A stretch of DNA of 64,000 nt from Fonticula alba ATCC 38817 (taxonomy: Eukaryota; Protista; Nucleariida): assembly GCA_000388065.2 (NCBI GenBank), contig KB932208.1, one strand, 5' to 3'. Numbering within the stretch: the stretch's first letter is position 1; every line of letters starts with the position of its first letter. Made by a program: the position numbers and the translations under genes. The notes under the pieces are model-generated. The model saw only the letters and a program-made list of their open reading frames with translations, ran no database searches and had not been told where the DNA came from. Of this stretch, positions 2,042 through 57,567 are shown piece by piece.

Positions 2042-4578
2042 TCAATTTCCGGGCGTCAGGGATTTGAGCCACGCCTTGGCCGCCGCATGGATGTCCTTGG
2101 TGTGTTCCCGGTTTCGGGCGTACACGCGCAGGCGATACTCGATAAAGGGGCCGTCCAGGTCGGGCAGCGGCGTGTCGCGGGGCAGCAGCAGCAGCTCTTC
2201 ACCCCGGCAAGAGAGGAGGCAGTCAAGGGGAGGAAAGAAAAGAAAAGAAGGAAGCGGCGAGGCCTCCCCGTGTTAGATGATGCACAGCGGGAGAGGGGCC
2301 CAGCCGAACGCGCGCACATGTGCCCGTTTTTAAGCACGTACTGTCCGGCTTGTCCTTGGAGAAGAAGAGCACCTTGACCATCGGGTCGTTCTCCTTGTCA
2401 CCGTGGTGGATGGATGCCAAATCCACATGGAAATCGTCCCTCTTTCATGGCGCACACCGGGAGGGTGAGACGTCTTTCCGGCCGGATGCATGGCGGAGGG
2501 CAGAAAGAAGGGGAAGGACAGCGAAAAAAAAAAAAGACAAAAGAAAACACACGACCGGGGCAAGCAGGTCGCGCGTCAGCCCGCCCCCACCGGCGAACAT
2601 ACCCGGAGCTTCTCGGTGCTGTCCTTCTCAAGGATCTGGTTCTTGAGCCCATCCTCCTTGGCCGCGCGGGTCTGATACAGTTTCCGTGTTGTGAATCCCA
2701 TCGGCGCACCGGGAGACCGACCTTCAGGTCAGCAACAGCGCCCGGGCCATGAGGCGGAAGGGGCCCGCTCCGATCCCCCCACACCCCCCCCCCCCCACCC
2801 CCCCCCCCCTTGCACATGCGGCGTACGCACCAGATCCCGGTACAGGGTCCTGTTGTAGAACACCTTCTCGAAGGCCAACTGATAGAGGTCGCGCTTGCGG
2901 ATGCGCTCCACCAGGCCCCGGGCCTGGGCCATGCTCTTGAAGTGCTCGGACTCGCTGTTCTTGTCGCACGGCTCCGGGTCGCCACACATGCACCGCCAGC
3001 CGTGGGCCGCCGACGCGGCAATCTGGTCCAGGATGCCGTCGGTCAAGTGCACATACATGGCCGGGTTGTGGACCATGCTTGAAATGCGCAGGGCCCCGTC
3101 GGCCTTCAGTAGCGCATCCACCACCATCAGGTTGATGGCCTCGGCTGCATGTGCCATCGCGGGGGGACCGAAGTCCAGAGGTACACGGGAGTACACAGAA
3201 GCATGGAGAAGCAGAAAAAAAACCCCAGAAGCACGCAGAGACAGACAAACACACAGATACACACATACATGACGGCGGCAGCGGGTTAGAGATGCAACAG
3301 CCACACGGCAAAGCAGAAGCCATGGCCCATATGACGCACAGACGCGATGCGTGTACACATGCTTGAACAGGTTGAAGCGCGTCTGGAACATCAGCCGCAG
3401 GTTGGGGAACTCCTTCTCCGGGAAGGCGATCTGCCCCTCGACAATGCGCGCGCTGTTCACCAGGCGCATGGGGTTGTACGCGGTCTGGGCCCCGGCATTG
3501 TAGGTGTCCCGGCGGAAGTAATCAAACCGGTCCACATCGATGCCGGTGTCGTCATTGGCCACGATCTGGAAGAGGAAGCGCACTTCCGGCGAGGCATACC
3601 GCTTCAGGCTGGCCGGCACGTCGGCCTGAGCGCGCAGGCCCTTCCCACTGTCGATGACGGCCTTCACCAGGCCCGGGCTGAAGGGGATGTCGCCATTCTG
3701 CTTGGACTTGAGCCACATCAAGCCATCGGCATCCTCCTGAAGACCCAGGTACCGCAGCAGATCGTCGAGCATGTCCACCGACCCTTTCTCATGCGTCCAG
3801 TGGTCGCCCTTCGGCGCGTCGCTGGGTCATCCCATTGTCCCCGGTCATCCCGCGCCCCGCGCGCGCGCGAGCATCCACCGCCCACAGCATGGTGTTAGTA
3901 TGCCCCGGCAGAAGGAAGCATCCCCCCCCCCCCCGCCCCCTGGCCCCATGTGGCCGAGTGCAAGCGCCCACACACACACACACACACACACGTACACAGC
4001 CCGGAGCATGAAGTTCCCATCAAACAGGTGGCTAAAGGGCCCGTGCCCCAGATCATGGCACAGCCCGGCGATGATCAGGCTGGTGCGTACTGCCAGGAAG
4101 TCCAGCCCGGCGAAGGCCCCCGGCTGCGTGGCCCACAGCCGATCCACCAGCGTCCGGGTCAGATGGCCCACCCCGAGCGAATGCTCGAAGCGCGTGTGCG
4201 CCGCGCTCGGGAACACGTACGACGTGATGCCCAGCTGCTTCAGGCCCCGCAGCCGCTGGAAGTGCGGCGTGTCCACGATCTGGAAGAAGTACTGCCCCCG
4301 GTCGGTCGGCACGACGGGACCAAAGGCCCAAGCAAGGGCACGAAGGAAATACATGACCACCATCAGCACCGGGCCCAAGAGGAAGGTGGCACATCCGCCC
4401 GCCCGCGTGGAGGCGCAGCAGGGGAGAAGAGGAAAAGGACACATGGGGCGAGCGAGCGAGCGAGAGAGAAAGGCAGTACCTCTTCCAGGGCGTAGTCGTT
4501 GTGGATGCTGTCGTTCAGAGTGCGCAGCTCATGGTTGATGGACACCCCGGGAGGGAGGGGCTCGGACTTGGAGACCAT
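2042..4578 (-). CDS. SAMHD1: SAMHD1-like HD-domain dNTP triphosphohydrolase, copy 1 (no SAM domain), 7 exons
   Basis: Exons approx. 4578-4480, 4291-3996, 3821-3340, 3144-2831, 2671-2603, 2441-2342, 2196-2042, with consistent phases. Motifs [75 protein letters not shown] and EYRLRVY match the SAMHD1 HD family. Confidence 0.93.
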
Positions 4579-5465: not shown

Positions 5466-7963
5466 CTACCGGCGAGGCGCCGCCCCTTGGGCCCGGGTTC
5501 TCTGGTGCTCGAACCACTCCCTCGTCGCCTGGTGGATGCGGGCCTTGTCCTGCTTGTTGCGCACATACACGCGCACTCGGTACTCCCCGAAGGGTCCCTT
5601 GAAATCCGACGCGACACTGCCGGACCTGTCCAGCAGCCCTTTGCGCGGGGGGGGGCCGGCCATTCGGTCGATGGTTCGGTCGATGGTTGAATGTTGATCG
5701 AGTCGATGGTCCAGCCAGTTGTACAGTCACCCAAGCGGCCAATCGTTCGGTCAGTTGTCTAGCCAGTTGCTTGGCCAATCAGCCGCTCGCTTGGCCATTG
5801 CACAGTACGATGCACCTCCCCCCTCCACAGCCAGAGGGCCGCCCACGGCCAAAAGGCGGTCACCCGCACGCCCCCATCCCCTCGGCCGCGGAGGACGCAC
5901 TGTCCGGGTCTTCCTTGCCGAAGAACAGCACCTTCCGCATGGGGTCCTCCGCCCTGGCCCCATGGTGAATGGTGGCCAGCTGCACATGCATGTGGTCCTG
6001 CGCGAGCGGCACCCCCCGTCGAGGCAGGCCCGGTTAGCCGGGCACACAATGCGGCCACCGTGGCCCGTCACCTGCAGCGTTTCCCCGCCCTCCTCGCCCG
6101 CCCGGCCCGCCGCGTGTGTCACACCTACCATCGCCGGGTCCGCTGTGCTCTGGAGGATTTCGCTCTTGAGTGCCTCCTCGCCAATGGCCGCCAGGTGGGC
6201 GCTCTGCACCCGGCCAGCCATCGGCCACCGGCCGCCGTCCAGGTCAGTGAAATGCCCGACCGCCGCCTGCGAAGAGCCCGCCGCCCGCCCTGCCCCCCAC
6301 ACCCACGCACATGCGCGGGCATGTGCAACACGCGCACCAGGCTCCCATGCAGCGCATGGTCATAGAACACCTCCTCGAAGGCCAGCTTGTAGAGGTCGCG
6401 CGTGCGGATGCGCTCGACCAGGGCCCGGGCCCGGGCCATGCCCTTGGCATGCCGCGACTCGCGGTTGTCCGCGCAATTGTCCCGGGCGTCGCACTGGCAC
6501 CGCCACCGGCGCGTGCCCGACGCCGCAATCTCATCCAGAATCCCATCATTCAAGTGCATGTACGCCGCCGGGTCATGGATCATGCTGGAAATGCCCAGCG
6601 CCCCGTCGGCCTCCAGCAGCGCGTCCACCGCCATCAGGTTGACGATCTCCGCTGCAATGGTCCCCGGGCCCTTGCGACGCATTAGTGCCCGGAGCCTCCT
6701 GCCGGTGGATCGTGCATCTCCCGCCCCCGCCCCCCGCCCCCGCCTTGGCCTGGACCCTGACGACACGCACACACCCGGTGCGTGTACACCTGCCTGAACA
6801 GGCTGAAGCGCGTCTGAAACAGCAGCCGCAAGTTGAAGAACTCCTTCTCCGGGAAGGCGATCTGCCCCTGGACAATGCGCGCGCTGTTCACCAGGCGCAT
6901 GGCCACGTAGCTCACCTGCGACCCGGCGTTGTAGGAGTCCCGGCGGAGGTAGTCAAACCGGTCGACATCCACCCCGGTATCGTCGTTGGCCACGATCTGG
7001 AAGATGAACCGCACCTCGGGCCTGGTGTATGGGGCCAGGCTGCCCGGGGCAGGGGCCAGCCCCCCGGGGCCGCCGGCGATGATGGCCTTCACCAGCTCCG
7101 GATGGAAGGCTGCCGGCGCGGCCCGGCCAAAGGTCACCACCCCCTGGGCATTCGGCTCCAGACGCAGGAACCCGAGCAAATGGTCGAACATATCGACCGA
7201 GCCCTTTTCGTGCCTCCACGCCGGCGCCCGGGGGCGGCCATCGGCCTGGTGCCGGGCGCTGTGCCGGCCATGTGCCCACATCGGGCCCGGCGCCCGCCCG
7301 ATCTCGTGCATGGGGTCAGCTTGGTTGCCTCGGGCATGGCGGATGATGGGCCGCGCCCGGAGGATGCCCCGAACGCACGCGGCCCGGGGGAGGAAGTTCC
7401 CATCAAACAGGTGGCTAAAGGGCCCGTGCCCCAGGTCATGGCACAGCCCGGCGATGATCAGGCTGTTGCGCACCACCGGGAAGTCCAGCCCGGCGAAGGC
7501 CTCCGGCTGCGTGGCCCACAGCCGATCCACCAGCGTCCGGGTCAGGTGGCCCACCCCGAGCGAATGCTCGAAGCGCGTGTGCGCCGCGCTCGGGAACACG
7601 TACGACGTCACGCCCAGCTGCTTCAGGCCCCGCAGCCGCTGGAAGTGCGGCGTGTCCACGATCTGGAAGAAGTACTGCCGCCGGTCGGTGGCCCGCGGCC
7701 GCCCCCCCCCCCGGCCACCGCCGTGAGGGTACACCCGCGCGTCAGTGTACGCCTCCCTAAACACCCATGCGGCTGGGCTAGCGCGTGTTACACCCCCCCC
7801 CCCCCCATCGGCCACCGGTCCGAGGTACCTCCTCCAGCAGATAATCCCCATGGATGCTGTCATTCAGGTTCCGGAGTTTGTAGCGTGGCTGCCGCCCGGC
7901 GCGGTCGCCGTCAGGAGCCTCCACTCGCACGGCCGCCGGCCCTGGCATGCCCTCAGCCGTCAT
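5466..7963 (-). CDS. SAMHD1: SAMHD1-like HD-domain dNTP triphosphohydrolase, copy 2 (no SAM domain), 7 exons
   Basis: Same intron positions and phases as copy 1 (exons approx. 7963/7948-7829, 7674-7379, 7258-6771, 6651-6338, ~6200-6129, ~5998-5901, ~5638-5466). Motifs [68 protein letters not shown]. Confidence 0.93.
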
Positions 7964-9515
7964 GGTGTTTGTACTTGGTGCTGTGCCTGCCGCGCGTCAA
8001 TGGTGTGGCGCGCCGGTGTGTCAGAGGGATGGGCGGGTGTTTGAGCGTGAATGCGTTCGCGAGACAGGGGCCAGGCAGGGGAGGAGGAAGGCCGATTTTT
8101 CTGGGCCACTCACATCCCAGCAGGGCCTCCTCGCTCAAGTATCCCGCGCCGCGCGCCCCTCCCCCTGGGCCCCTCCCCCCGGCGTGTGTGTGTGTGTGTG
8201 TGCGTGGCGCCCGGCCGCCCCTCGCCGCACGCTGGCCGCCGAGAGTGCCCCACGCCAGGGGGCTCCCGGCGCCCCAGCCGAGGCTCGCCTCTCGGCTGAC
8301 AACCGCCCGGGCGCCCTGCCGTGGGTTGTCATCGCGGGGCGGAGTGGGGAAAGCAAATAGCTAAGCCCCCGACATGGGGCCGGACGCCCCCCCTCCCCCG
8401 TCCCTTCCCCCTCGGCGTGCTACCTTCGTGCTTGCACGGCCGCCGGCAGAGCCGCCCATCGCCGCACGGCATGGGCCATGCTTCTCGGCAGGATGCAGCG
8501 ACACCACGCAAAGGGGGCACCCGAGCCGGCCCGGCGATCGGGCCGACCCTCTCTGGCCCGCAGCGGCGCCGGCCACCAGCCAGCCATCAATTGTGGGGTG
8601 ACACATTGTCCGATTTCCCCCCCCGGCGGTCGACGACGCTCGTCGGGTGGGCGAAAGGCACGGGGATCAGGCGCGGCGGCCCCGTGGACGCTCACGTGCC
8701 ACCGGCGGGTTAAGACCGGGCGCGGCCGTAAACCCACCCTGCCCTTGGTTGGCTTGTTGCAGCCGCCGCCGCCGCCGCCACCGGAGAACGCCCGGCCGTG
8801 TTTACCACACTTTGTCAGAGGTATTCAACATTCCCCCCCGCCCAGCGGCGGGTCCCGCCGCAAGGCGCGGCGCGCGAGGCTGCCGAGGCCGGGGCCCCGG
8901 GCCGTCGGTCGGGCCATGCCGGTCGGGCTTGGGCCGGGCGTGCTCGATCGCCCGGAGAAGGGCCCCTGTCCCCTCGCGCCCCCCCCCCCCCCCCGATCGG
9001 GGCTTCGATCGGCGCCAGATCGCGCAGCGCCGATCTCCCTCGCGGCACGCCCCTCCCTCCGGCCACCCGGCACGGCCCGGGCCTCCTGCTACCGCCCAAG
9101 TGGCTGCGACAGGGCCCCACAGCAGGCAACGAGCCCTCGCGCGCCGGCCACATCTGCCGGATGTCCCCGGAGACGGCATCGCATTGGGAAGGGCATATCG
9201 CCCCGGCCACCGATCGGCCGGCCTGCGGGTCGCCCTCATCTGCGGGGCTGACCGTCTCTGCTGCCCCGGGGCCCCCCTTCCCCCTGCCAGGCGGCCCCGG
9301 GCGGCTCCTCTCGGCCCCGGTCATGCCTCCCGCCCGGGGCAGCGCATGCGAGGGGCGTGTTCTTTTTGGGTGCCCAGCCCGACCCCCACCGCCTGCTCCT
9401 CCCCCCCGCAGATGGCACCGCCCTCCTCCCCTCCTCTCCCCCCCCCCCGCCCCCGCCCCCTGTTTGTGCCCCGTCCCACCTGTCGGGGCCCATTCGCTCA
9501 CCCCCCGCCCCCCCC

Positions 9516-12500
9516 ATGGTCGGCCGCCACCCTCGTCCCAGGGCCCCGCTCCTGGGCATCCTGCTCTTGCTGCTGCTGCTGCTGCTGCTCCGGCCCGGCA
9601 CATCGGGCGCCCTCGCCCGACGCGGTGTCTCCCCCCCGGGCCCGGCGCCGGTGTCCCTGGCGATGGCCGACGCCCCGGGACCGGCCAGCCCCACGGCCGA
9701 CCCGCCAGCATGCCACCCCACCTGTGCCCAGTGCTTCGGGCCCACCGGGCAGGACTGCCTCCGGTGCCCGGACGGGCGGGCCCTCCACCAGGGGGCCTGC
9801 CTGCCGGCCTGCCCGGCCGGCTTCTTCCCCACCCCCTCCACCGAGGGCACCCTCTGCCGGAGCTGCCACACATCGTGCGCCGGCTGCATCGCCTCGGACG
9901 CCGGGGCCTGCACCGCCTGCCAGCCGGGGCTGGTGCTGCTCGAGGGCCGGTGCCAGCCCGGGGCCTGCCCGGCCGGCACCTTCCCCGACCCGACGTCCGA
10001 CAGCGCCCCCTGCCGCGCCTGCCACCGGTCGTGCTCCACCTGCACCGGGCCGGATGCCGGGCACTGCCTCTCCTGCCCCGGGCATGCGGTGCTCACCGGC
10101 GATGGGGCCTGCCGGCCGGCCTGCCCGGCCGGGCACTACCTCTCCCCCGATCGGGTGCCCTCCTGCCGGGCATGCCATGCCACGTGCGCGGCCTGCCGGC
10201 ACGGCCAGGCGGCCGACTGCACCGCCTGCCCGGCCGGCCGCCAGCTGTCCCTCGGCCGGTGCGTGTCCCCCTGCGGCCCGGGGGCCACCCTCCACCAGGA
10301 GGCCTGTGTCGCCTGCCATGCCTCCTGCACCGAGTGCTCCGGCCCCGGGCAGGGCCACTGCCTGGCCTGCTCGGCGGGCCTCTGGCTTGGGCCCGATGGC
10401 CGGTGCCTGGGCCAATGCCCGGCCGGGTGGTTCCCCGAGCCGGCCCCCGGCCGCCGGTGCCTCGCCTGCCCGGCCCCCTGCGACCAGTGCGTCAGCTCCA
10501 CCGAGTGCACCGTCTGCCGGGCGGGCTGGCAGCTGGACCCGGGGTCCAGCACCTGCCGGCCGGCCGCCGGGGCCTGTCCCCAGGGCCGGTACCCGGCCGC
10601 CGGCAAGTGCCTCCCCTGTCACCACTCATGTCGCGCCTGTTCCGGCCCCTCGGAAGCCGAGTGCCTCCTGTGCCCGGCGCACCGGGTGCACTGGCCCGGC
10701 GCCGGGACCTGCCCGCTGGTCTGCCCGGCCGCCGAGTATCTGGAGTCCGGCGACCCGCCGGACCCGACCGGCCGCCGGTGCGCCCCCTGTGCCCGCGGCT
10801 GCCGGGCCTGCGCCGGCCCCTCGCCCAGCGCCTGCTCCCAATGCCAGGCCCCCTTCCTGCAGGTCGGCGACCAGTGTCTGGCCTCCTGCCCGGCCGGCTT
10901 CATCCAAGTCCCGGACCTGACCCAGCCGGATGTGGCCTCCTGCCGGGCCTGCCCGGCCCCCTGCACCGCCTGTGTGGCGGTCCTCCAGCAGGCCGGCGAC
11001 CCGGCCTGCCTGGCATGCTCCCCGGGATATGCCCTGGTGCCGGCCGCCCCGGGCGGCCCGGGGTCCTGTGTCTCCTGCCCGGCCCGGTGCCTGGAATGCT
11101 CGGACCCGGCCCGGTGCCACCGGTGCGAGGCCGGCTTCCAGCCGGACCCCTCCTCCGGGGCCTGCCTGCCGTCCTGCCCCCCGGGGACCTGGTTCCACCC
11201 GACGGCCCGGGCCTGCCAGCCCTGCGCCGGCCCCTGCGCCCGGTGCCTCGACGCCCCGGACCACTGCACCGCCTGCACCCCGGGCACCTACCTCTCGCAG
11301 GGCACCTGCGCCGGCTGCCATGCCTCCTGCTCCGAGTGCCAGGGCGAGGCCGCCTGCACGGCCTGCGCCCCGGGGCTCGTCTTCCCCGGCCCCCCCGGGC
11401 AGTCCCTCTGCACGGATGCCTGCCCGGCCGGGCAATTCGCCGACCTCCCGGCCGGCCGGTGTTCGCCCTGCGTCGGCCCCTGCGCCGAGTGCCTCGGCGC
11501 CGCGGACCGCTGCACCGCCTGCCTGCCCGGGGCCTTCCCGGCCGGCGGCACTTGCGCCGCCTGCCACGGCTCCTGCGCCACCTGCCCCGGGCCCGAGGCA
11601 TGCGCCACCTGCGCCGAGGGGCACCTCTTCGCCGGGGCCCCCGGGCAGTCCCTCTGCCTGGCGGCCTGCCCGGCCGGCACCTTCCCCGACTCGGCCGCCG
11701 GCCGGTGCACCCCCTGCCATGCCACCTGCGCCGCATGCACCGGCGCCGCGCGGCAGTGCACCGCCTGCGCGCCGGGCTTCCGCCCGGAGGGGCCTTGGTC
11801 CGAGGCCGGCCGGTGCGTGGCCTGCCCGGATGGGTGTGCCGGCTGCGACGCGGCCGGCCGGTGCACCGCCTGCGCGCCCGGGCTCCAGCTGACCCCGGCC
11901 GGGCAGTGCGCCTCCGACTGCCCGGCCGGGCACTACCCCCAGGCCGACGCCTGCCTGCCCTGCCACGAGTCCTGCGCCTCCTGCTCCGGGGCCCGGGCAT
12001 GCGGCACCTGCCAGCCGGGGCTCGTCTTCGCCAGCCCCGATGGCCTGCCCTCGCTGTGTGTCTTCTCCTGCCCGGAGGGGCACTTTGCCGACCCCCAGTC
12101 CGGGCGGTGCGCCGCCTGCCATGCCTCCTGCGCGGCCTGCACCACCGCCGCCGGCCAGTGCACCGCCTGCGCGCCGGCCTTCCGCCCGGAGGGGGCCTGG
12201 TCCACCGCCGGCCGGTGCGTGGCCTGCCCGGCCGGGTGCGCCGCCTGCGACCCGGCCGGCCGGTGCACCGCCTGCACCGGGGCCCTGCTCCTGACCCCGG
12301 GCGGGGCCTGTGAGTCGTCCTGCCCGGCCGGGCAGTTCGCCGCCTCCGGCCGCTGCCACCCCTGCCGGGCCCCCTGCGTCCAGTGCATCGACACGGCCGA
12401 CCACTGCATCACCTGCATCCGCGGGACCTTCCTCCGGGAGGCGGTCTGCACCGCGTGCGATGCCTCCTGCGCGGCCTGCTCCACGGCCCAGGCCTGCAGC

Positions 12501-15500
12501 ACCTGCGCCGAGGGGCACCTCTTCGCCGGGGCCCCCGGGCAGTCCCTCTGCCTGGCGGCCTGCCCGGCCGGCACCTTCCCCGACCCGGCCGCCGGCCGGT
12601 GCGCCCCCTGCCATGCCTCGTGCGCGGCCTGCACCACCGCCGCCGACCAGTGCACCGCCTGTGCGCCGGCCTTCCGCCCGGAGGGGGCCTGGTCCGAGGC
12701 CGGCCGGTGCGTGGCCTGCCCGACCGCCTGCTCGGCATGCGACCCGGCCGGCCGGTGCACCGCCTGCACCGGGGCCCTGCTGCTGGCCCCGGACGGCACC
12801 TGCGCCTCGGCCTGCCCGGCGCACACCTGGCCCGACACCGGGGCCCGCGTGTGCCGGCCCTGCCAGGCCCCATGCTCCCGGTGCACCGGGCCCCGGGCCT
12901 GTGTCTCCTGCCTGCCCGGCACCTACCTCGACCGGGACGCCTGCCTGCCATGCGACGCCTCGTGCGCCGCCTGCCCCGGGCCCGCGGCATGCGACACCTG
13001 CGCCCGGGGGCTGCTCTTCGCCGGCGAGCCCGGCCACTCGCTCTGCCTGGCGGCCTGCCCGGCCGGCACCTTCCCGGCCGTCGACCGGTGCGCCGCCTGC
13101 CATGCCACCTGCGCCGCATGCACCGGCGCCGCGCGGCAGTGCACCGCCTGCGCTCCGCGCCACCGGCCCGAGGGGGACTGGCCGGCCGGCGGGGCCGGCG
13201 GCCGGTGCGTCCCCTGCCCGGCCGCCTGCACCGCCTGCGACCCGGCCGGCCGGTGCACCGCCTGCGCGCCCGGGCTCCAGCTGACCCCGGCCGGGCAGTG
13301 CGCCTCCGGCTGCCCGGCCGGGCACTACCCCCAGGCCGACGCCTGCCTGCCCTGCCAGGCCCCCTGTGCCGAGTGCACCGGGCCCGGGCACTGTCTCTCC
13401 TGCCCCCCGGGGGCCTTCCTCCAGCTGGACACATGCGCCGAGTGCGATGCCTCCTGCGCGGCCTGCTCCGACGGCCGGTCCTGCGATGTCTGCCGGCCGG
13501 GGCACTTTTTCGCCCGGCCCGCCGGCCTGCCCGGCCTGTGCCTGGACGCCTGCCCGGCCGGCTCGCTGCCGCTGGCCGGCCACTGCACCCCCTGCCATGC
13601 CTCGTGCGCGGCCTGCGCCACCGCCGCCGACCGGTGCACCCGCTGTGCGCCGGCCTTCCGCCCGGAGGGGGCCTGGTCCGAGGCCGGCCGGTGCGTGGCC
13701 TGCCCGGCCGGGTGCGCCGCCTGCGACCCGGCCGGCCGGTGCACCGCCTGCACCGGGGCCCTGCTCCTGGCCCCGGACGGCACCTGCGCCTCGGCCTGCC
13801 CGGCCGCCACCTTCCCCCACGACCGGGCCGTCTGCCTGCCCTGCGACCCGTCCTGCTCCCGGTGCACCGACGACCAGGCCTGCCTCGAGTGCGCCCCGGG
13901 GCTGGTCTTCCTCTCGCCCGACCCCGGGGCCCGGTCTCTCTGTGTGGGCACCTGCCCGGCGGGGTTCCTGCCCGAGGGCCCCCGGTGCCTGGCCTGCGTG
14001 GCCCCCTGTGCCCGGTGCACCGAGGCCCCGGACCGCTGCACGGCCTGCCTGCCGGGGCTCCGCCTGGCCGAGCCGGCCGAGCTGGCCGCCCAGCCGGCCG
14101 CCCAGTGTGTCCCCTGCCCGGCCGAGTGTGCCGGCTGCCTGCCGGACGGCCGGTGCACCGCCTGCCCGGATGCCCCGGGCCCCGGGGCCCGGCCGGTCTT
14201 GTCGCCCTTCGGCCGATGCCTGGCCCACTGCCCGGCCGGCTGGTATGCCGACCCGGAGGCCGGCCGCTGCCGGCCCTGCAACGGCTCGTGCGCCACCTGC
14301 TCCGGGCCCTCGGCCTGCGACACCTGCCAGCCGGGGCTGGTGTTCCTGGCCCCGGGCGCCCGGCCGGCCGAGGCCCCTGACCCGGCCCCCCCCGGGCCCG
14401 GGGGCACCCTTTGCACGGACGTCTGCCCGGCCGGCCAGGTCCCCGGCCGGACGCCCGACCCGGCGGCCAGCCCGCAGTGCGTCCCCTGCGCCGGGGCCTG
14501 CGCGACGTGCGTCCACACCCCGGACCAGTGCGTGGCCTGTGCCCCCGGGCACCGGCCGCACACGCCCCACGACCTGCCCGGCGCCTGTGTCCCCTGCCCG
14601 ACCGGCTGCCACGACTGCCTGGACAATGGCCGGTGCTTGGCCTGCCTGCCGGGCTCCGGCCTGGTGTTGACCCCGGCCGGGCGATGTGCCGCCGCCTGCC
14701 CGGACGGCTGGTTCGCCTCCGGCCACGGGCACTGCCTCCGGTGCGCCGACGAATGTGCCACCTGCACCGGGCCGCTGCCGGCCCACTGCACGGCCTGCCG
14801 CCCGGGCGCCAGCCTCCTGCCGGCCCCCGGCCCCGGCCACTGTGCCACCCCCTGCCCGGCCGGCCACTTCCGTGATGACACCTCCCCCGAGTGCCGGGCC
14901 TGCCACCGGGACTGTGCCTCCTGCACCGGGCCCACCTCGGGCCACTGCGTCGAGTGCTCGGCCCCCGGCCTCCTCCAGCTGGATGGCCACTGTGTGGACG
15001 CCTGCCCCGACAGCTTCTTCCCCCAGGCCGGCCGCCGGTGCGTCCGGTGCCATGGGGCCTGCCACGCCTGTGCCGGGCCCGGCCCGGGGGACTGTCTCTC
15101 CTGCCCGGCCGGCCTGGTGGCCCTGAGCCTGGTGGCCGCCGGCCGGCCGCGCGCTTGCGGCAGCTTCTGCCCGGCCGGCTCGGCTCTCGACCCGGAGGCC
15201 GTGGCCTGCCGCGCCTGCCCGGCCGACTGCCCGCAGTGCGACGCCGCCGGCGTCTGCCAGGCGTGCGGCCCCGGGTGGCTGCTTGCCGCCGGTGCCCCGG
15301 CCTCCGCCGGCATCTCCGCCCCCCTGGCGGGCCCGGGCCCGGGGCCGGGCCCGCCGCAACCCGCATGCATCCGCGGGCCCGACTGTCCGGCCGGCGCCGC
15401 GCCGCACGGGACCCGGTGTCTTGCCTGCGCCGCCGGGTGTGCCACCTGCGCCGGGCCCGAGGCCGACCAGTGCCTCACCTGTGCCCCGGGCTTCGACACG

Positions 15501-16787
15501 CCCTTCGAGGGGGCCTGCCTGGCCGCCTGCCCCCAGGCCGGGTACTTCCCGCATCCGCGCACCGGCCAGTGCGTCGGCTGCCATGCCTCCTGCCTCGCCT
15601 GCACATCCATCCAGGAGGACGCCTGCACCGCCTGTCCCCCGGACCATGCTCTCTGGCAGGGCACCTGCCTGGCCGCCTGTCCGGCCGGCACCTTCCGCCA
15701 GGCCCCCGACTCTCCGGACGCCTCGGGCTCTTCGGGCCACCAGGACGCCCCGGGCTCTTCGGGCCACCAGGACGCCCCGGGCTCTTCGGGCCACCAGGAC
15801 GCCCCGGGCTCTTCGGGCCACCAGGACGCCTCGGGCTCTTCTGACCACCAAGGCGCCCCGGCCCCCCCCGGCATGCAGGACGCCCCGGTCCCCTCCGGCT
15901 ACCGGTGCATCCCCTGTGACTCGGAGTGTGCCGGGTGCGAGGGCCCGGGCCCGGGCCACTGCACAGGCTGCCCGGCCGGGCGCCTGCTCGGGCCCGATGG
16001 CCATTGCCTCGACGAGTGCCCGACCGGCTTCGGGCCCTGCCATTCGGACGGCCGGTGCATCCGCTGCCCGGCCGGCTGCGCTCGCTGCCAGCCGGCCCCG
16101 GACCAATGCCAGTCGGGCGTCTGCCTGGCCTGCCAGCCCGGGCTCTTCCTCGGCCTCGACAGCCAGTGCCACGACGCCTGCCCGGTGGGGGAGTTCCCGC
16201 CGGCCAGCGTGCCGGGCCAGTGCTTCCAGTGCGCCAAGGCGTGCGCCTCCTGCGCCTCCTCGGCCGAGGCGTGCACCTCCTGCGCCGATGCCGACCACTG
16301 GCTGGTCCTCGGCACCGGCGAGTGCACCCGGGCGGCGTGCCCGGAAATGGGCTTCGCCACTTTCCACGACCCGGCCATCGGCCGCGTGTGCATCCCCTGC
16401 CATGTGGCCGGGTGCGAGTTTTGTTCCCTGCCTCCGGCTGCCGACCCGGGCTGCCGGCGTCTGGCCGACCGGGGCATCACCTGTCCGGACCTTGACCGCT
16501 GTGACCGCTGCGCCTCCGGGCGAAGCATCCTCCCCGGGGGCCAGGCCGCCGACCAGTGTGTGCTCGCCTGCCCCGGGGGCTTCTTCAGCTCCTCCACCCC
16601 GGGCAGCGGCGCCCTCCGGTGCATGAACTGTGCCCCGGGCTGCAACCACTGCCAGGGGCCGCTGCCGGTCGACTGCCTCGACGAACGGCCCGAGCCCTCT
16701 TCTCGGCCGCTCGGTGCGTCGCGCCTCCCCCGTGTCTGTGTTCCCCCGCCCGGGGGCGCGACCTCCGCGTATCTCCCTTGCCTCATG

Positions 16788-16820
<33 letters not shown>

Positions 16821-16876
16821 CTCTCCGAGCACAAATGACGAGCTAACAGACCCCCACACTCGTCCACCCACCCACC

Positions 16877-16932
<56 letters not shown>

Positions 16933-18850
16933 GATAAGCCCTTGGTCTCGGCATCGGCATCGGCTCCGCCCTGCTCATCCTGCTGATCATCGGCGTCATC
17001 GTGCTGGTCATCGTCCGGCGTCACCGGGCTCCACACTTGCTACTGCCCAAGGTGCGCCGGTCTCCCCCTGCCTCGCCCTTTTCGCGCGCCTGCAGCCGCC
17101 AGCCCAGCCCATGCGCATGAGGGATGCCCACCCTGGTTCACTGACGCTCTCTGCCCGATGCCACAGACCACTGCCCCGGATTACGGTACGCCGTCGTCTC
17201 GGCTTCTGTTTGAGCCTTTCGCCCGGTCCACGCCGCTGCTTTGCCTTGCTCAGTCTTCGGGTCTCTTGCTCTCCTGCCCCCTTTCTCTCTCTCACACACA
17301 CACACACACGCACCCACACTCTGTCTCCCGCCCTCCGCCCCTTCCCCCTTCCAAAACCCAGACGCGACGGTCCTTAATACCTTGCCGGAGCTCAGCATGC
17401 CCGGCGCGGCCCTCGTCTCCGCCGACTACGACTTCATCCCCATCGAGGAGGGCAAGCTCGGCGAGGGGGCCCAGGCGTCGGTTTACTCGGCCCGCGTGGT
17501 CGGCGACGGCCTGATCTCTCGACTCCGCTGCCCGGCCATCGTGGCCATCAAGCGCAGCAAGGGTACGCTCCTCCTCCTCCTCCTCCTCACCGGGCAATGC
17601 CTCCCCCCGTCCCTCCCCCCGTGACGCCATCCGCTGACCGGCGCCCGTCCCTGTGCCAGAATCCATCCAGGACGACCTTCGCGACTTCCTCTTCCAAAAT
17701 GAGATCTCCCTCATGTGGTCCGTGTCATCCCCATAACCGCCTGCCGCCGTTCTCTGGCCCTCTCCGACCGCATGCGCCCGCCCGGGTGCTCTCCCTCGCG
17801 GCCCCACACCCACACATGTGCACCAGTGCTTACACATAGGTCGCCCCTCGCCTGTGACTCGCATCCCCTCGCCCCGGCCTCCCGCGCCCGGCACAGGCTC
17901 GCCCGCGGCCAGCCCAACATCGTCCAGATCTTCGGGTACTCCGAGCGCCCGCAGGCCCTGATCATGGAGAAGTTCGACTCCTGCCTACAGACGCTGCTCT
18001 TCTCCGGCGTGGCCCTCGCCATGGACGAGTCCCTGGATCTCATGGCCGACGTGGGTGCGTGGTCGCTCCCATGCCTGGCCCCCCCTCCCGCTCCTCCCCC
18101 TCCCGCGCGCGCGCCCCCTCGCCACGTGTCCCNNNNNNNNNNNNNNNNNNNNNNNNNNNNNNNNNNNNNNNNNNNNNNNNNNNNNNNNNNNNNNNNNNNN
18201 NNNNNNNNNNNNNNNNNNNNNNNNNNNNNNNNNNNNNNNNNNNNNNNNNNNNNNNNNNNNNNNNNNNNNNNNNNNNNNNNNNNNNNNNNNNNNNNNNNNN
18301 NNNNNNNNNNNNNNNNNNNNNNNNNNNNNNCCCTGTGTTGGTGGGAGAGTGCGCGTGCGAGGGGGGACAACTCCAATGCCCTGGTACGTATGCACACCCC
18401 AGCCACCGTACTGTCGCTGGCCTGTCCTTGTCTGCTGGCCTCCCCCCCCCCCCCTCCCCTCCTCCCCCGTCCAGGCACTCACCCCTTCTCTCCGCCTCCG
18501 GCCGGTGCAGAGCCTGCGCGCCTTCGAGACCCAGCAGCCCATCCTCCCGGCACTCTACCTCCAGTCGGATGTCTACTCCACGGCCGTGCTCCTGTGGGTG
18601 ATCCTCGCCCGGCGCGCCCCGTCCCATGGTGCGTGTCCAGCACCTGTCTTCCTGCCCCGGGCGCTCGCCCTCCTCTCCCACCTTCGGGCTGGGCGTCTCC
18701 CCATCTGGCCGCACTCACATGGCCTGCTCGGTGCATGTTGGCCCACTCACCCACTCACCCACTCACCCACACCTCTACACCTCCACACCTCTACATACAC
18801 TCACCCACTCACCCACTCACCCACTCACCCACTCACCCACTCACCCACAC

Positions 18851-19618: not shown

Positions 19619-19689
19619 TGCGTCGACCGGGAATCGAACCCGGGTCTACCGCGTGGCAGGCGGCAATTCTACCACTAAACCATCGACGC
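19619..19689 (-). tRNA. tRNA-Gly (GCC)
   Basis: Reverse complement GCGTCGATGGTTTAGTGGTAGAATTGCCGCCTGCCACGCGGTAGACCCGGGTTCGATTCCCGGTCGACGCA folds as a 71-nt cloverleaf: anticodon loop CT-GCC-AC, T-loop TTCGATT, downstream T5 at 19604-19608. Confidence 0.96.
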
Positions 19690-20180: not shown

Positions 20181-20253
20181 GCCTCGATAGCTCAGTTGGG
20201 AGAGCGTGTGACTGAAGATCACAAGGTCACCAGTTCAATCCTGGTTCGAGGCA
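20181..20253 (+). tRNA. tRNA-Phe (GAA)
   Basis: GCCTCGATAGCTCAGTTGGGAGAGCGTGTGACTGAAGATCACAAGGTCACCAGTTCAATCCTGGTTCGAGGCA: 73-nt cloverleaf, anticodon loop CT-GAA-GA, TTTT at 20261-20264. Confidence 0.97.
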
Positions 20254-27219: not shown

Positions 27220-28416
27220 CAACTTAGTCACTGCCGGAGAAAGGGGAGGACCAGCGCACCCGGACCGAGGAGGGAGAGGCAGGGGGGGNNNNNNNNNNNN
27301 NNNNNNNNNNNNNNNNNNNNNNNNNNNNNNNNNNNNNNNNNNNNNNNNNNNNNNNNNNNNNNNNNNNNNNNNNNNNNNNNNNNNNNNNNNNNNNNNNNNN
27401 NNNNNNNNNNNNNNNNNNNNNNNNNNNNNNNNNNNNNNNNNNNNNNNNNNNNNNNNNNNNNNNNNNNNNNNNNNNNNNNNNNNNNNNNNNNNNNNNNNNN
27501 NNNNNNNNNNNNNNNNNNNNNNNNNNNNNNNNNNNNNNNNNNNNNNNNNNNNNNNNNNNNNNNNNNNNNNNNNNNNNNNNNNNNNNNNNNNNNNNNNNNN
27601 NNNNNNNNNNNNNNNNNNNNNNNNNNNNNNNNNNNNNNNNNNNNNNNNNNNNNNNNNNNNNNNNNNNNNNNNNNNNNNNNNNNNNNNNNNNNNNNNNNNN
27701 NNNNNNNNNNNNNNNNNNNNNGGGGGTGTCAATAGTGGCCACAGGGCGCGCGGGGAGGCGAGAAAAAGAAAGAGAGAGAGAGAGAGAGAGAGTGACCGAG
27801 GGTCGAGGGGCGCACAGCGAGGCTCCGGAAGTTTCTGAGAGCAGGGGCGCAGCTGGCTAGCGGGGACTCGGCTGCATGGGCAAGTGGCTGTCGGGTGCGG
27901 GGGCGAGGGTGGGAGAGGGAGAAAAACAGGCGTGGGTGTGGGGGTGTGGGCGTGGGTGCGTGTGGGTGCGCGTGTGGGTGTGTATGGGTGTGTGCGGGGG
28001 GGAGAGGAAGGAGGCAGAGGGGGAGAGGGGAAATTCTTCTCTCCAAGGGTTGGGCTGAGTGGGGCCTGGGGCGCATCTAGCGGGGGGTGCGGCGCTTTTT
28101 TCTCCCGCGCTCCTGGCCGCGGGGGAGGCCCGGGCCGGGAGGCGAACGGCGTCCGGACCCCGCGCGCCCCCGCCCCCGCCCCCGCCCCCGCCCCAGACCC
28201 CGAACACGGACAGCGCGGGGAAGGGCGCGCTCCCGCGCAGCCGGGAAACACGCGCCTGCCCCGGGGGAAGAACGGGCGCGCAACCGCCGACCCATCATCA
28301 GTTGGCTCCCGCCTGCTGCCGCCTGCCGGTGTGTCCCCCCCCCCCCCGGGCCACATGAGTGATTGTCCGTTTCACCCCCCGGGGGGCTAGCGGTGCCGGC
28401 GGCAGCAGTCGGGGAC

Positions 28417-33001: not shown

Positions 33002-34205
33002 CTACTTCGAGGGCGCAGCGGCACCGGCGGCCGGCGCGCTGTCCGCTCGCCCGTACCGGCCGCTCCCGCGCTTGCGCTTCACGGGCACTGCCTCGCGCGG
33101 TGCCGTGACCCGGGTCAGGAGCTGAGGCAGGGNNNNNNNNNNGCCTCGCGCGGTGCCGTGACCCGGGTCAGGAGCTGAGGCAGGGGGGGGGGGGGTTCAG
33201 AGTTCAGGTTGCTGTGTGTGGGGACGCGAGGATGGGCACACGAGGCGACAGGCGCCGGCAGGGGCCTCGGGTAGCGACCTCCGACAGGAGGACACACATA
33301 CACACACACAGTCACACAGTCACACAGTCACACACACACACACGCACACGCACACGCACACGCACACGCACACACACAGTCACACACAGTCACACACAGT
33401 CACACACACACACACAGACACGCAGGCAGGACGCACCTTGTCCAGGTTCACGCCCGGCACCGTGAAGGCCAGCTTGGCCAGCGCCTGACTGCTACCGCCG
33501 CCACCCGTCTTGCCCTGCTTGGCCCGGCGCTTCTGGATGACATGCCGCGAGCGCTTGCGCGTGGCCAGGCGCTCCGTGCGCAGACCGTTCAAAAACTCCG
33601 ACGTGTCCTTCTCCTCGTCGGACACCGCCCCATCCTCCAGATAGGCTGACGGGAAGTTGAGCCGGTCAATGCGCTCCTGGCGCAGGGCTTCCCGCGCGGC
33701 CTCGAGTGCCTCGGCCGTGGTGGCCGTCGTGGCGACCTTGGCGACCTTGCCAGCCTCGGCGGCCTCCGTGGCGGGGATCCTGGCCTCTGCGCGACCCCAC
33801 CGGCGAGGGGGGGGGGGGGGGGGCCCGGGGCAGGAGGAGCCGAAGGCAGCCCCAGCGGGTAGGGAAGTAGGGAGCCAAGAGGAGGGTCAGNNNNNNNNNN
33901 NNNNNNNNNNNNNNNNNNNNNNNNNNNNNNNNNNNNNNNNNNNNNNNNNNNGGGGGGGGGGGGGGCACCGAGACAGAAGCAGCCGAATTCAGCCCCAGCG
34001 GCGGTCAGTGATGCGGGGCGATTTGGCGCGATGCCAAGGCAAGCTCTCTCCCCTGCAGAAAAAAGCACCCGGAAGAGACCGCCCCCCCAAAAAAAACACC
34101 CCCCCAGAACGTACTGTTCTTCCGAGCACTGCTGGGAGCAGGGCTGGCGCCGCCGATCTGCAGCTGCCTCAGGGCCAAAGCCTGCTGGATGAGCTTATTC
34201 GACAT
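33002..34205 (-). CDS. Small basic hypothetical protein (~190 aa, K/R-rich, probably nuclear or nucleolar)
   Basis: Exons approx. 34205-34112 (MSNKLIQQALALRQLQ...), 33786-33437 (...QERIDRLNFPSAYLE...TRKRSRHVIQKRRAKQGK...NLDK) and ~33122-33002 (LLTRV...VKRKRGSGRY...SK*), with compatible phases. A gap in intron 1 could hide another exon. Confidence 0.65.
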
Positions 34206-41619: not shown

Positions 41620-43694
41620 ATGCTCTCCCGCTCCGCCACCAGCATTGCCGCCGCCGCCGTGCGCGCTGCCGGCCGCCCGGCCGCCAGCCGTGCCCTCGGC
41701 ACCTCGGCCTGGGCCAACCTGAACCTCGTCGCGCCGGACAGCGTGCAGGAGCCCCTGTCGCTCTTCCACCTGACCGAGTCCGAGCAGATGATCCGCGACT
41801 CGACTCGGCGCTTCGCCCAGGACGTCATCAAGCCCCTGGTGTCGGAGATGGACGAGCAGTCGACCCTGAGCCCGACGGTTCTGTCGGGCCTCTTCGAGCT
41901 TGGCGTGCGTCCACCGCCACCCGCCGTGCCCCGGCCCGCCCGGCGATCGGCCGCCCGCTGGTGTTCTTCTTCTTTTTTTCTTCTCTCTCTCTCTGACCCC
42001 CACTGTCATNNNNNNNNNNNNNNNNNNNNNNNNNNNNNNNNNNNNNNNNNNNNNNNNNNNNNNNNNNNNNNNNNNNNNNNNNNNNNNNNNNNNNNNNNNN
42101 NNNNNNNNNNNNNNNNNNNNNNNNNNNNNNNNNNNNNNNNNNNNNNNNNNNNNNNNNNNNNNNNNNNNNNNNNNNNNNNNNNNNNNNNNNNNNNNNNNNN
42201 NNNNNNNNNNNNNNNNNNNNNNNNNNNNNNNNNNNNNNNNNNNNNNNNNNNNNNNNNNNNNNNNNNNNNNNNNNNNNNNNNNNNNNNNNNNNNNNNNNNN
42301 NNNNNNNNNNNNNNNNNNNNNNNNNNNNNNNNNNNNNNNNNNNNNNNNNNNNNNNNNNNNNNNNNNNNNNNNNNNNNNNNNNNNNNNNNNNNNNNNNNNN
42401 NNNNNNNNNNNNNNNNNNNNNNNNNNNNNNNNNNNNNNNNNNNNNNNNNNNNNNNNNNNNNNNNNNNNNNNNNNNNNNNNNNNNNNNNNNNNNNNNNNNN
42501 NNNNNNNNNNNNNNNNNNNNNNNNNNNNNNNNNNNNNNNNNNNNNNNNNNNNNNNNNNNNNNNNNNNNNNNNNNNNNNNNNNNNNNNNNNNNNNNNNNNN
42601 NNNNNNNNNNNNNNNNNNNNNNNNNNNNNNNNNNNNNNNNNNNNNNNNNNNNNNNNNNNNNNNNNNNNNNNNNNNNNNNNNNNNNNNNNNNNNNNNNNNN
42701 NNNNNNNNNNNNNNNNNNNNNNNNNNNNNNNNNNNNNNNNNNNNNNNNNNNCCCCCCGCGCGCGACCCTGTTGCCGAGCCTTCCCGTGGGCTCCCTCCCC
42801 TCCGCTGGCCCCTCGGCCCTCTCCTCCTCCCCTCACACATATCCACGCTGCTCCCTTCCGCCCCCCCCCCCCTTGCCGGCCTGCAGAGCTGGCTCGGATC
42901 GACCCGGCCGTCTCGGTCGTTTGCGATGTCCAGGTACGCCCCTCGCACAGGCACATGCACGCGCGCGCCGGCACCGGCGGCCTCCCGCTCACCTCGCGCG
43001 CCCTCGCGGCCCCGGCGGCCACAGAACACCCTGGTCAACACGGTCTTCCGTAAGTACGCCTCCGAGGACCTGCAGAAGCGCTACCTGCCCCGGCTGGCCA
43101 CCAAGGCCGTCGGCAGCTTCTGCCTGTCGGAGGCCGGCTCCGGCTCGGATGCCTTCGCCCTGCGCACGCGTGCCGTTCCGCAGGACCCGGCCGCCGCGCC
43201 GACCGCCACCAGCTACAGCCTGTCCGGCACCAAGATGTGGATCACCAACGCCGGCGAGGCGGACGTCTTCCTGGTCTTCGCCAACATCAACCCCGAGCTG
43301 GGCTACCGCGGCATCACCTGCTTCGTGGTGGAGCGCGACATGCCGGGCGTGTCGGTCGGCCCGAAGGAGAAGAAGCTCGGCATCCGTGCCTCCTCCACCT
43401 GCCCGGTCATCCTGGAGAATGTCGTGGTACGTGGCCGCGCCCTGGAGGGCGTCTGTCTTCCGTCTCCCCTGCATCCTCCCATGTGTCCTTCCCCCCTCCC
43501 CTTGCGCGCCTCACTGCCCGGCCCTGGTCTCACTGTCCCTGTTGCCCTTTGGCCGTGTCCCCTCGCCGTGTTCTTTTCCTGTGCTCCTTCGCTGCGAACC
43601 TCTCTTGTCTTCCCCCCCCCCCTGCTCCTCTTCACTTGCCCCTCTCCACTTGCCCCCCTCTTCACTCGCCCCTCTTCACTTCCCCCCCCCCCGC

Positions 43695-55482: not shown

Positions 55483-57567
55483 CGCGAGCGCGGGCTAAAA
55501 GGGGAGGCGAGGAGGAGAAGAAGCAGAAGCAGAAGAAGACCCGTGGGACCAGGACAAGGGGCAGGACAAGCAGGAGGTCAGGGGCCATCCATGCCCGCGC
55601 GCGGAGAGAAGCCAACGCAGAAAAAGAAACACACCTAAGCACACGAGAGGCGAAGAGTAGTCACCGGGAAACGCAAAGGGAGGATGATGGTGGCTGCGTG
55701 GCGGCGGGAGGGGGAGGGGGGGGGGAGGAAGAGACGGGGAGAGATGGGGAGACGGGGAGAAGATGAAGGAGGGGGCGGGGGCCTACTCTCCGGCCGAGGA
55801 AAAGGTGCACAAGCAGAGGGGGGAAGAGGAAGGGAGGAACGTGAGGATACTCTTGGCGCGGCTCCCGGCCGGCGGCGGGATTGGCTCTGCCCACCCGCCG
55901 AAAAAGCTCCCCCACCACCCCCACCGCCGCGCCCCATGCGCCAAGGAGATCCGGCCCACTCGCCGTCAACCAGGTGAGTGGGATATACCCATAACACCCG
56001 CCCACACACGCACACGCACACGCACACGCGCGCGCACACACACACACGCACGCGCACACCCCCGCACAGGGCTACCGCAAACCGCGCCAAGATCCCCGGC
56101 GCAGCCGGCATACGCGTGGGTCCAGAGGCCGGGACGGCGCCAGTCAGAAGCCCGCTGGCAGATGCCACGTGCGGAACCATCCCGGTCCCCGCGCGCCTTG
56201 CCCGGCGGCTAAGCACGGCCGCCGACAGCGGCGGGAAAAAGCGGCCGCGTGGGGTCCCGGCCCCCCCCCCCCCCCCTCAGCCCCCTCCGTCCAGTGCGAG
56301 CCCAGGGACGCCAGGATGCGCGGCCCCAGGCCCACCAGCCCCGCCTCCCGGCCCCGCCACTCCCGCAGGGAAGACACTCGCCGAAAACTCACCCACACCA
56401 GGTATTGACGACCCCCCCAATCGGCTCGATCATGTAAGTGGGCCCGGCGCGCGCACACGCCCCCCAGCTCAGCCACATGGCGGCTGCCCCAGGTCCCCCC
56501 CTCTGACACGGGCGGCCGAGCCCGCCGGGGAACCCCCCGCCGCCTCTGCCCCTCGCCGCACACAGGAGACCATGCCAGGTTTATGCCATGCCACGACCGC
56601 CGCCAGGCTCAGGGAACGAGGAAAGAGGCCGCCTCCCGCCGCCGAAGTGGCCGCCGGGGGGCACCGAGCCCGGCCCCAGCCGGAACGGATGAACCCTTGG
56701 CTAGGGTATCGGGTATCATGTGCACGAGTGCCAACGATGGTGTGGAGCGCCATCGGGCGTCCGTCGGACCCTCCTGCCGCCGTGCGTGCGGCCCGCCTCC
56801 CCCCCCCCCCCCCCCCTGCCCCCAACCGGCCGATTGTGGCCGATGCCCCCGCCCGGGCCCCCGGCACGCCGCGAGGCCAGTCCCAACGCACGCACGCGTG
56901 CCCCCGCCGCCCCCACCGTCCCCACCGCCCCCACCGCCCCCCGCACCTCGCGCGTGCCCCTCCGCTCCTCGACCGCGGACAGCCCCACCCGCCCCCGGGT
57001 GCCTCTTCCCCACGAGCACCCGCGCCGGCCGGGGAGCGGCTGCCCGGCCCAACCCACACCCGCAGACGAGATCCCGGCCCCGGGGCCAGTGCCCCGGCGA
57101 ATGCGCCGCCAGCCAAAGAGCCGCAGCGCCGGGGCATGGCGCCGCCCACGCGCCGCAGCCACACCTCGCCGCGGACCGCCGCTCCCTCCCCCTCCTCCTC
57201 CCCCTNNNNNNNNNNNNNNNNNNNNNNNNNNNNNNNNNNNNNNNNNNNNNNNNNNNNNNNNNNNNNNNNNNNNNNNNNNNNNNNNNNNNNNNNNNNNNNN
57301 NNNNNNNNNNNNNNNNNNNNNNNNNNNNNNNNNNNNNNNNNNNNNNNNNNNNNNNNNNNNNNNNNNNNNNNNNNNNNNNNNNNNNNNNNNNNNNNNNNNN
57401 NNNNNNNNNNNNNNNNNNNNNNNNNNNNNNNNNNNNNNNNNNNNNNCCCCCCGCCACCCGTGCCCCGATGCCCCGCATGCTCTGTCTGTCCATTGACCGG
57501 AAGCCCGCCCTCTTTTCCCCCCATCCCCTGTCCCCGGTGCCGCCGGGCCCCGGCGGTCGTCCCGCAG

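Follow-up and report, generated by a model that had tools for sequence, protein, structure and literature searches.

A candidate Cys3-His metal site in a loop insert of the tandem SAMHD1-type genes of Fonticula alba

Do the SAMHD1-type enzymes of Fonticula alba carry a metal-binding or redox element of their own? The question is raised by two neighbouring genes in a window of 64,000 nucleotides (contig KB932208.1, strain ATCC 38817), the whole stretch of DNA analysed here, in which an initial annotation had noted a shared motif with three cysteines and one histidine. The origin of the window in F. alba is supported by the identity of its proteins to GenBank entries, and its G+C content is 60-80%. 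We found that the motif belongs to a loop insert that may form a metal-binding site in front of an allosteric helix.

The motif and the insert

Both peptides are exactly as the initial annotation gave them, with equal spacing, but they are read from the minus strand, on which the genes lie; the plus-strand reading of both intervals gives unrelated peptides. The positions concerned are as follows.

2042-4578, minus strand: copy 1 gene, H696_04690 (KCV68396.1, here P0003, 504 residues), from its annotated span, HD domain and SAMHD1 fold
2831-3144, minus strand: copy 1 exon 4, the motif exon, with an AG acceptor and a GTGCGT donor; full codons 3142-2831 encode residues 294-397, and the translation equals P0003
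2948-3013, minus strand: copy 1 insert of about 22 residues (S337-S358), from the homologue alignment, the gap relative to the structure 9mr6 and the coil in the AlphaFold2 model
2942-2998, minus strand: copy 1 motif, W342-H360, 19 residues
2992-2990, 2986-2984, 2968-2966 and 2944-2942, minus strand: copy 1 candidate ligands C344, C346, C352 and H360
5860-7963, minus strand: copy 2 gene as annotated (542-residue product), from the gene call and sequence reading
6338-6651, minus strand: copy 2 exon 4, the motif exon, with splice sites read from the sequence; full codons 6649-6338
6449-6505, minus strand: copy 2 motif, WRCQCDARDNCADNRESRH
6499-6497, 6493-6491, 6475-6473 (Cys) and 6451-6449 (His), minus strand: copy 2 candidate ligands

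Read on the minus strand, copies 1 and 2 are tandem, intron-containing genes with the same exon layout. Their motif exons have 104 full codons each and align without gaps at 63% amino-acid identity. The two motifs are identical at nine of 19 positions (W, R, C, C, C, N, E, S, H), again without any insertion or deletion, and the spacing C344-x-C346-x5-C352-x7-H360 of copy 1 recurs in copy 2.

The loop at this site is 13 residues long in about 100 of 120 homologues and 35 residues long in the tandem copies, i.e., the latter have an insert of 22 residues. The flanking anchors 'Y..LTD' and 'RDLY....' are 40 residues apart in about 100 of the 120 homologues. In copy 1 they are 62 residues apart and, in a third Fonticula paralogue encoded on another contig (H696_00980, here P0004), 79. 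The Protein Data Bank (PDB) entry 9mr6 aligns with copy 1 on both sides of the motif, and has about six residues where the query has 26, leaving a gap of about 20. The initial annotation thus rightly saw extra residues here compared with canonical SAMHD1. The Pongo and Chlorocebus entries, which otherwise served only as a reference for residue numbering, show the short loop 'ILYSTDPKLKD' that it credited to the human protein.

Both genes can be assigned to the SAMHD1 family. Pfam found an HD domain and no SAM domain, and residue 19 of P0003 already aligns with human K116. The AlphaFold2 model of P0003 has a predicted local distance difference test score (pLDDT) of 91.4 and a predicted template modelling score (pTM) of 0.91; its top Foldseek matches were the Rhizophagus irregularis 9mr6 and human SAMHD1 tetramers (E about 1e-30, template modelling (TM) scores 0.75-0.90). 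Human residues H167, H206, D207, D311, H210, H215, H233, R164, Y315, D319 and R366 are all kept in P0003 and P0004. We used the database protein P0003 wherever a full-length copy 1 sequence was needed; copy 2, whose annotated protein was absent from the word-search matches, was compared exon by exon. The metal-ligand and catalytic residues that fall in exon 2 are conserved in copy 2.

The allosteric sites are kept to different degrees. In allosteric site 1 (AL1), human D137, Q142, R145, R451 and N119 correspond to D40, Q45, R48, R377 and N22 of copy 1, and K116 to R19; the equivalent of K455 is Q381 in copy 1 and a Lys in copy 2. In the second site (AL2; human R333, R352, K354, N358, R372, H376, K377, K523), copy 1 has P266 at R352 and H286 at R372, the rest being kept or conservatively replaced. 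AL2 is poorly conserved outside vertebrates and plants, and most non-vertebrate SAMHD1 members lack the SAM domain (PMC12042053). Judged from domain content, fold and these residues, the tandem genes encode SAM-less homologues of SAMHD1-type deoxynucleoside triphosphate (dNTP) triphosphohydrolases, with predicted activity and tetramerisation.

The closest structural comparison is the enzyme of R. irregularis (9MR6; PMC12042053). It shares the fold (TM 0.78-0.90), the catalytic His/Asp set, the D-x4-Q-x2-R of AL1 with the Arg equivalent to R451, the lack of a SAM domain and the lack of the C341/C350/C522 triad of the human protein. It differs in having the 13-residue loop where Fonticula has the 22-residue Cys3-His insert, and copy 1 differs from it by the Gln at K455 and by the Pro and His at R352 and R372 of AL2.

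Distribution and origin of the insert

A word search restricted to the insert (P0003 residues 318-388) returned 13 candidates, of which only the query's own cluster scored. Such a search is too insensitive to establish absence. We therefore searched a profile of the two motif exons exhaustively against all 1.84 billion cluster representatives, clustered at 50% identity. No match extended across the insert except those to the query's own cluster (E 1e-59) and to P0004 (E 1e-8). Almost all other matches consisted of two stretches flanking the insert, with the 13-residue loop 'IE.S..P.L..[AS][RQ]' between them. Clustering at 50% may hide close relatives inside the query's own cluster; the search with 90% clustering found none. 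In a scan of metagenome contigs with the two-copy exon profile, none of the 118 pattern matches was confirmed by tblastn. The profile search, the word search and the metagenome scan all yielded Fonticula only, which agrees with the proposal of a lineage-specific element: as far as public data go, the insert is restricted to Fonticula. It also appears to be undescribed, as had been supposed, since our literature search found no publication pairing SAMHD1 with Fonticula and no Pfam family matched the insert.

The loop itself is an insertion hot spot, which green algae, fishes, molluscs and further groups have independently lengthened by 6-100 residues. The sequence 'HPCSCSNEF' occurs at this position in some fish paralogues, and green algae (Stichococcus, Prototheca, Dunaliella and their metagenomic kin) have 10-13 extra residues there. 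Among the algal sequences P0132, P0138, P0270, P0144, P0129, P0275 and P0283, some read 'PGWRAC..DDRH' or 'PGWQC..DDSH' right before the helix. A common origin of the algal ('PGWRAC...RH') and Fonticula inserts was considered and rejected. An earlier FastTree tree had placed the two groups side by side with a support of only 0.195. In the maximum likelihood tree of 51 homologues made by IQ-TREE with the loop columns removed, the Fonticula pair (P0003 and P0004) lies among early-diverging fungi and well away from the green algae, so the algal inserts are of independent origin. The convergent pattern of a Trp, a basic residue, a Cys and a downstream His might stem from a common structural solution.

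P0003 and P0004 are sisters (support 0.977, FastTree), and the Fonticula insert probably arose once, before the duplications specific to Fonticula. In the IQ-TREE tree the branch of P0003 is much longer than that of P0004, so the lineage of the tandem pair evolved faster. The insert of P0004 is homologous but longer, with 39 residues at the same loop (residues 323-363). Compared by eye, it has 'AASA..RC', 'C-D' and a His immediately ahead of the helix in common with the tandem copies. Its candidate ligands are C329-x11-C341-x21-H363, i.e., Cys1, Cys3 and the His are kept at other spacings and Cys2 is missing. The initial annotation spoke of both paralogues, and this stands for the tandem copies, which share the full motif; it did not count the third paralogue, whose Cys/His set is altered. 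At its second Cys, the P0004 sequence is 'C-D-G-S-K', which misses the CDGSH signature by a single residue.

A candidate metal site and its alternatives

Copy 1 has only four cysteines in 504 residues: C111 in the HD motif, and C344, C346 and C352 in the insert. The probability that at least three of four fall within a given 22-residue segment is about 3e-4, and within any 9-residue window about 2.6e-3. Exons 1-4 of copy 2 show the same pattern, the motif holding three of four cysteines. Cys content averages 1.9% in the homologues, as against 0.2% in copy 1 outside the insert. Between the copies, the motif exon has a synonymous divergence (dS) of 0.52 and a ratio of non-synonymous to synonymous divergence (dN/dS, ω) of 0.45. 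For the 19-residue motif, dN is 0.42, dS is 0.53 and ω is about 0.8; ten of the 19 residues differ, yet the three Cys and the His are all kept. The codons of C346 (TGT/TGC), S358 (TCC/TCG) and H360 (CAC/CAT) differ synonymously. These figures support a non-random clustering and retention of the Cys/His set.

The motif segment aligns without gaps between the copies at 67% identity, whereas the introns align with many gaps at 23-52%. The segment is thus coding sequence that recent gene conversion has not homogenised. An unannotated mini-intron was rejected on the same contrast and on the gap-free frame of both copies; a 39-nucleotide GT...AG pair of copy 1 is not matched in frame by copy 2. The shared Cys/His set was not put down to recent gene conversion either, in view of the dS of the motif exon, of which the motif segment is the most diverged part.

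In the AlphaFold2 model the insert (337-358) is a coil between the helices 330-336 and 359-375. Its pLDDT is 84-86, compared with 66-76 in the other variable loops of the same model, which is compatible with a Cys3-His site but not diagnostic of it. H360 stands at the N-terminal end of helix 359-375. Just beyond the C-terminal end is R377, the equivalent of human AL1 R451 and of Rhizophagus R320:

2891-2893, minus strand: R377 of copy 1, 17 residues after H360, placed by alignment

The R451 position is Arg in 111 of 112 homologues, and Rhizophagus R320 contacts the triphosphate of guanosine triphosphate (GTP) (PMC12042053). The initial annotation had placed the insert next to the allosteric GTP site. 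This does not hold, given that H360 and R377 are at opposite ends of the helix; their distance along it would be about 25 Å. The insert would rather cap the N-terminus of the AL1 helix, without adjoining the GTP site.

The composition of the insert, its retention and its modelled order lead us to favour, tentatively and a little short of calling it probable, a Cys3-His metal-binding site, a candidate knuckle with zinc as the most likely metal. The scenario would run as follows. In the Fonticula lineage, an insertion entered the short surface loop that precedes the helix with the AL1 Arg at its end. In the tandem pair this insertion would have become the compact element C344-x-C346-x5-C352-x7-H360, whose His stands at the N-terminus of the helix. 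The knuckle would chelate Zn2+ (most likely), fix the shape of the loop and cap the AL1 helix. Its thiolate ligands could make the enzyme sensitive to oxidants, a redox handle of its own in a protein without the C341/C350/C522 triad. We infer the binding of a metal, its identity, and a coupling to allostery or tetramerisation from these features.

Several observations weigh against such a site. The full C3H set is known from only two closely related sequences, and the presence of all four ligands among the nine conserved positions of 19 has a hypergeometric P of about 0.03, which is weak and post hoc. The insert of P0004, modelled with the same alignment, has a pLDDT of 47-64, below 50 across residues 328-341, and is predicted to be disordered. 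The alignment columns of the insert hold two sequences for copy 1 and one for P0004, and this shallow depth may explain part of the pLDDT contrast. Since P0004 has fewer and differently spaced ligands and is predicted to be disordered, the insert does not always carry the C3H set, which would be dispensable for the function of the family. A Pfam scan of the insert alone, in all three paralogues and at E up to 10, matched no family. The only PDB sequence match was a CCCH finger of ZAP (ICGQPQPCERLH; 6l1w, 3u9g), which at E 0.6-1.3 is not significant. The two share a 'C-G-x-P-x-P-C' stretch and the composition of three Cys and one His, but Fonticula has a Ser at the position of the ZAP His.

Judged from its sequence, the insert belongs to no described metal-binding family. 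CCCH fingers have the spacing C-x7-8-C-x5-C-x3-H, whereas in Fonticula Cys1 stands one residue before Cys2 and the His seven residues after Cys3; the spacing differs and zf-CCCH gave no Pfam match at E up to 10. The SWIM zinc finger, whose signature CxCxnCxH was reportedly defined by Makarova, Aravind and Koonin in 2002, has the same order of CxC, Cys and His. Its last pair is C-x-H, as opposed to C-x7-H in Fonticula, and there was again no Pfam match at E up to 10.

The insert could instead be a tolerated, functionless expansion of the loop, in which the shared Cys and His reflect common ancestry rather than selection. The independent inserts at the same site in other lineages, the ω of about 0.8 over the motif, and the divergent, predictedly disordered version in P0004 all fit this explanation, and so does a conservation that depends on two sequences only (P about 0.03). 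It accounts poorly for the gathering of three of the four cysteines in 22 residues (P about 3e-4). The synonymous changes in the Cys and His codons, whose residues were kept, indicate time elapsed under constraint. A pLDDT of 84-86 is also unusual for a 22-residue coil with almost no alignment depth. We regard a functionless loop as unlikely.

The redox context raises another possibility. Human SAMHD1 has a redox switch formed by C341, C350 and C522, whose oxidation state is proposed to control oligomerisation and activity, according to the account given in PMC12042053 (citing Mauney et al. 2017). Copy 1 has V259, A264 and S448 at these positions and P0004 has V, T and N; hence the Cys cluster of the insert is the only plausible thiol-based regulatory element in Fonticula. 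The C350 position is Cys in 104 of 112 homologues. It has been lost in all Fonticula paralogues (A264 in P0003, T250 in P0004) and, among the 112, otherwise only in Glomeromycota and two other sequences. The Fonticula cluster resembles the human switch in placing three Cys in a SAMHD1 enzyme, but they occupy other positions, clustered in a single inserted loop and accompanied by a His. This His points to metal binding, as a predicted function. Copy 1 has no signal peptide-like N-terminus; it is therefore likely to reside in a reducing compartment, which makes structural disulfides unlikely.

By analogy with the human triad, the three Cys could form a metal-free thiol switch, reduced at rest, in which a reversible disulfide or sulfenate formed under oxidative stress distorts the loop and the helix cap and alters activity or oligomerisation. 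The precedent of disulfide-based regulation in SAMHD1, as PMC12042053 relates it from Mauney 2017, speaks for this switch, as do the missing triad with its near-universal C350 and the concentration of Cys in an otherwise Cys-poor protein. Even the two Cys of P0004 would suffice for one disulfide. Yet the switch leaves the retention of H360 and the need for three Cys unexplained, and three Cys with a His inside 17 residues are a pattern seen more typically in metal sites. A further difficulty is that a disulfide between the Cys of a CxC, which stand two residues apart, is strained. We consider this switch rather improbable.

The order of the ligands also recalls the [2Fe-2S] motif of the CDGSH (mitoNEET-type, NEET) domain, which has the consensus C-X-C-X2-(S/T)-X3-P-X-C-D-G-(S/A/T)-H and 3Cys-1His ligation; the domain was initially mistaken for a zinc finger (PMC5859297). 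By this analogy the insert would bind a labile, redox-active cluster. An iron-sulfur site of this kind is very improbable: copy 1 has the C-x-C, prolines just upstream of Cys3, 'C-D' after it, a terminal His and a Cys1-to-His span of 16 as compared with 15 in CDGSH, and P0004 has 'C-D-G-S' at its second Cys, but the spacing is x5 and x7 instead of x8 and x3, 'DG(S/A/T)H' is absent from the tandem copies, the 'CDGSK' of P0004 lacks the CxC and puts a Lys at the position of the ligand His, zf-CDGSH was not matched by Pfam at E up to 10, the PDB sequence search returned no CDGSH chain, and a 22-residue loop is too small for the dimeric CDGSH fold.

The Cys3-His metal site can be extended into a regulatory one. 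The insert would then be a redox- or iron-responsive metal centre, either a Zn-thiolate switch or a labile 3Cys-1His [2Fe-2S] cluster, that couples oxidative or metal status through the AL1 helix to the assembly or activity of the dNTPase tetramer. It would be an independently evolved substitute for the C341/C350/C522 switch in a lineage without the near-universal Cys350. We think this extension quite doubtful.

Gene models, surroundings and significance

The boundaries of exons 1-4 of copy 1, as read from the DNA, agree with the annotated protein H696_04690. The remaining exons of this gene are as follows.

4578-4480, minus strand: copy 1 exon 1, read from the sequence with GT/AG boundaries
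4291-3996, minus strand: copy 1 exon 2, read from the sequence with GT/AG boundaries
3821-3340, minus strand: copy 1 exon 3, read from the sequence with GT/AG boundaries
down to about 2042, minus strand: further copy 1 exons, 3' of exon 4

In exon 2, which encodes the HD motif, the two copies (3998-4291 and 7381-7674, both minus strand) share 95% of their nucleotides and dS is 0.08, whereas identity is only 31-52% in the introns on either side. The pattern is suggestive of a short gene-conversion tract, or of an unusually strong constraint limited to exon 2. Both exons for which ω was measured between the tandem copies gave about 0.45. At the 3' end of copy 2 (5466-5905, minus strand), the annotated model, which ends at 5860, reads through a GTGCGT donor near 5903 where copy 1 splices. 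Further downstream, at about 5640-5469 on the minus strand, lies a sequence homologous to the last exon of copy 1, with 43% identity to P0003 residues 452-498 (E 4e-13). The gene call for copy 2 probably has a wrong 3' end, the true last exon probably being the one downstream.

Elsewhere in the window, a giant open reading frame with cysteine-rich repeats matches Pfam VSP and Furin-like_2, and two divergently oriented tRNA genes lie about 500 bp apart. An apparent AT-rich island at 42-44 kb was discarded, the trough in G+C being an assembly gap.

9357-16838, plus strand: giant open reading frame, 2493 residues in the window (annotated product 2707 residues)
19619-19689, minus strand: tRNA-Gly(GCC)
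20181-20253, plus strand: tRNA-Phe(GAA)
18133-18330, 27289-27721, 33891-33951, 42010-42751 and 57206-57446: runs of N (assembly gaps)

The dNTP pools of cells are controlled by SAMHD1 enzymes, whose regulation diversified outside vertebrates. The first fungal SAMHD1 structure, of 2025, revealed a simpler regulation and no redox cysteines. If the Fonticula insert does bind a metal, the family would have its first metal site, structural or regulatory, outside its catalytic and allosteric centres. Control of dNTP catabolism by redox state or metal would then have evolved a second time, by a different route, and the insert would offer a compact natural module for studying how signals are transmitted through the AL1 helix. 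Even if it is a mere decorated loop, it still marks this loop as the main insertion hot spot of the family.

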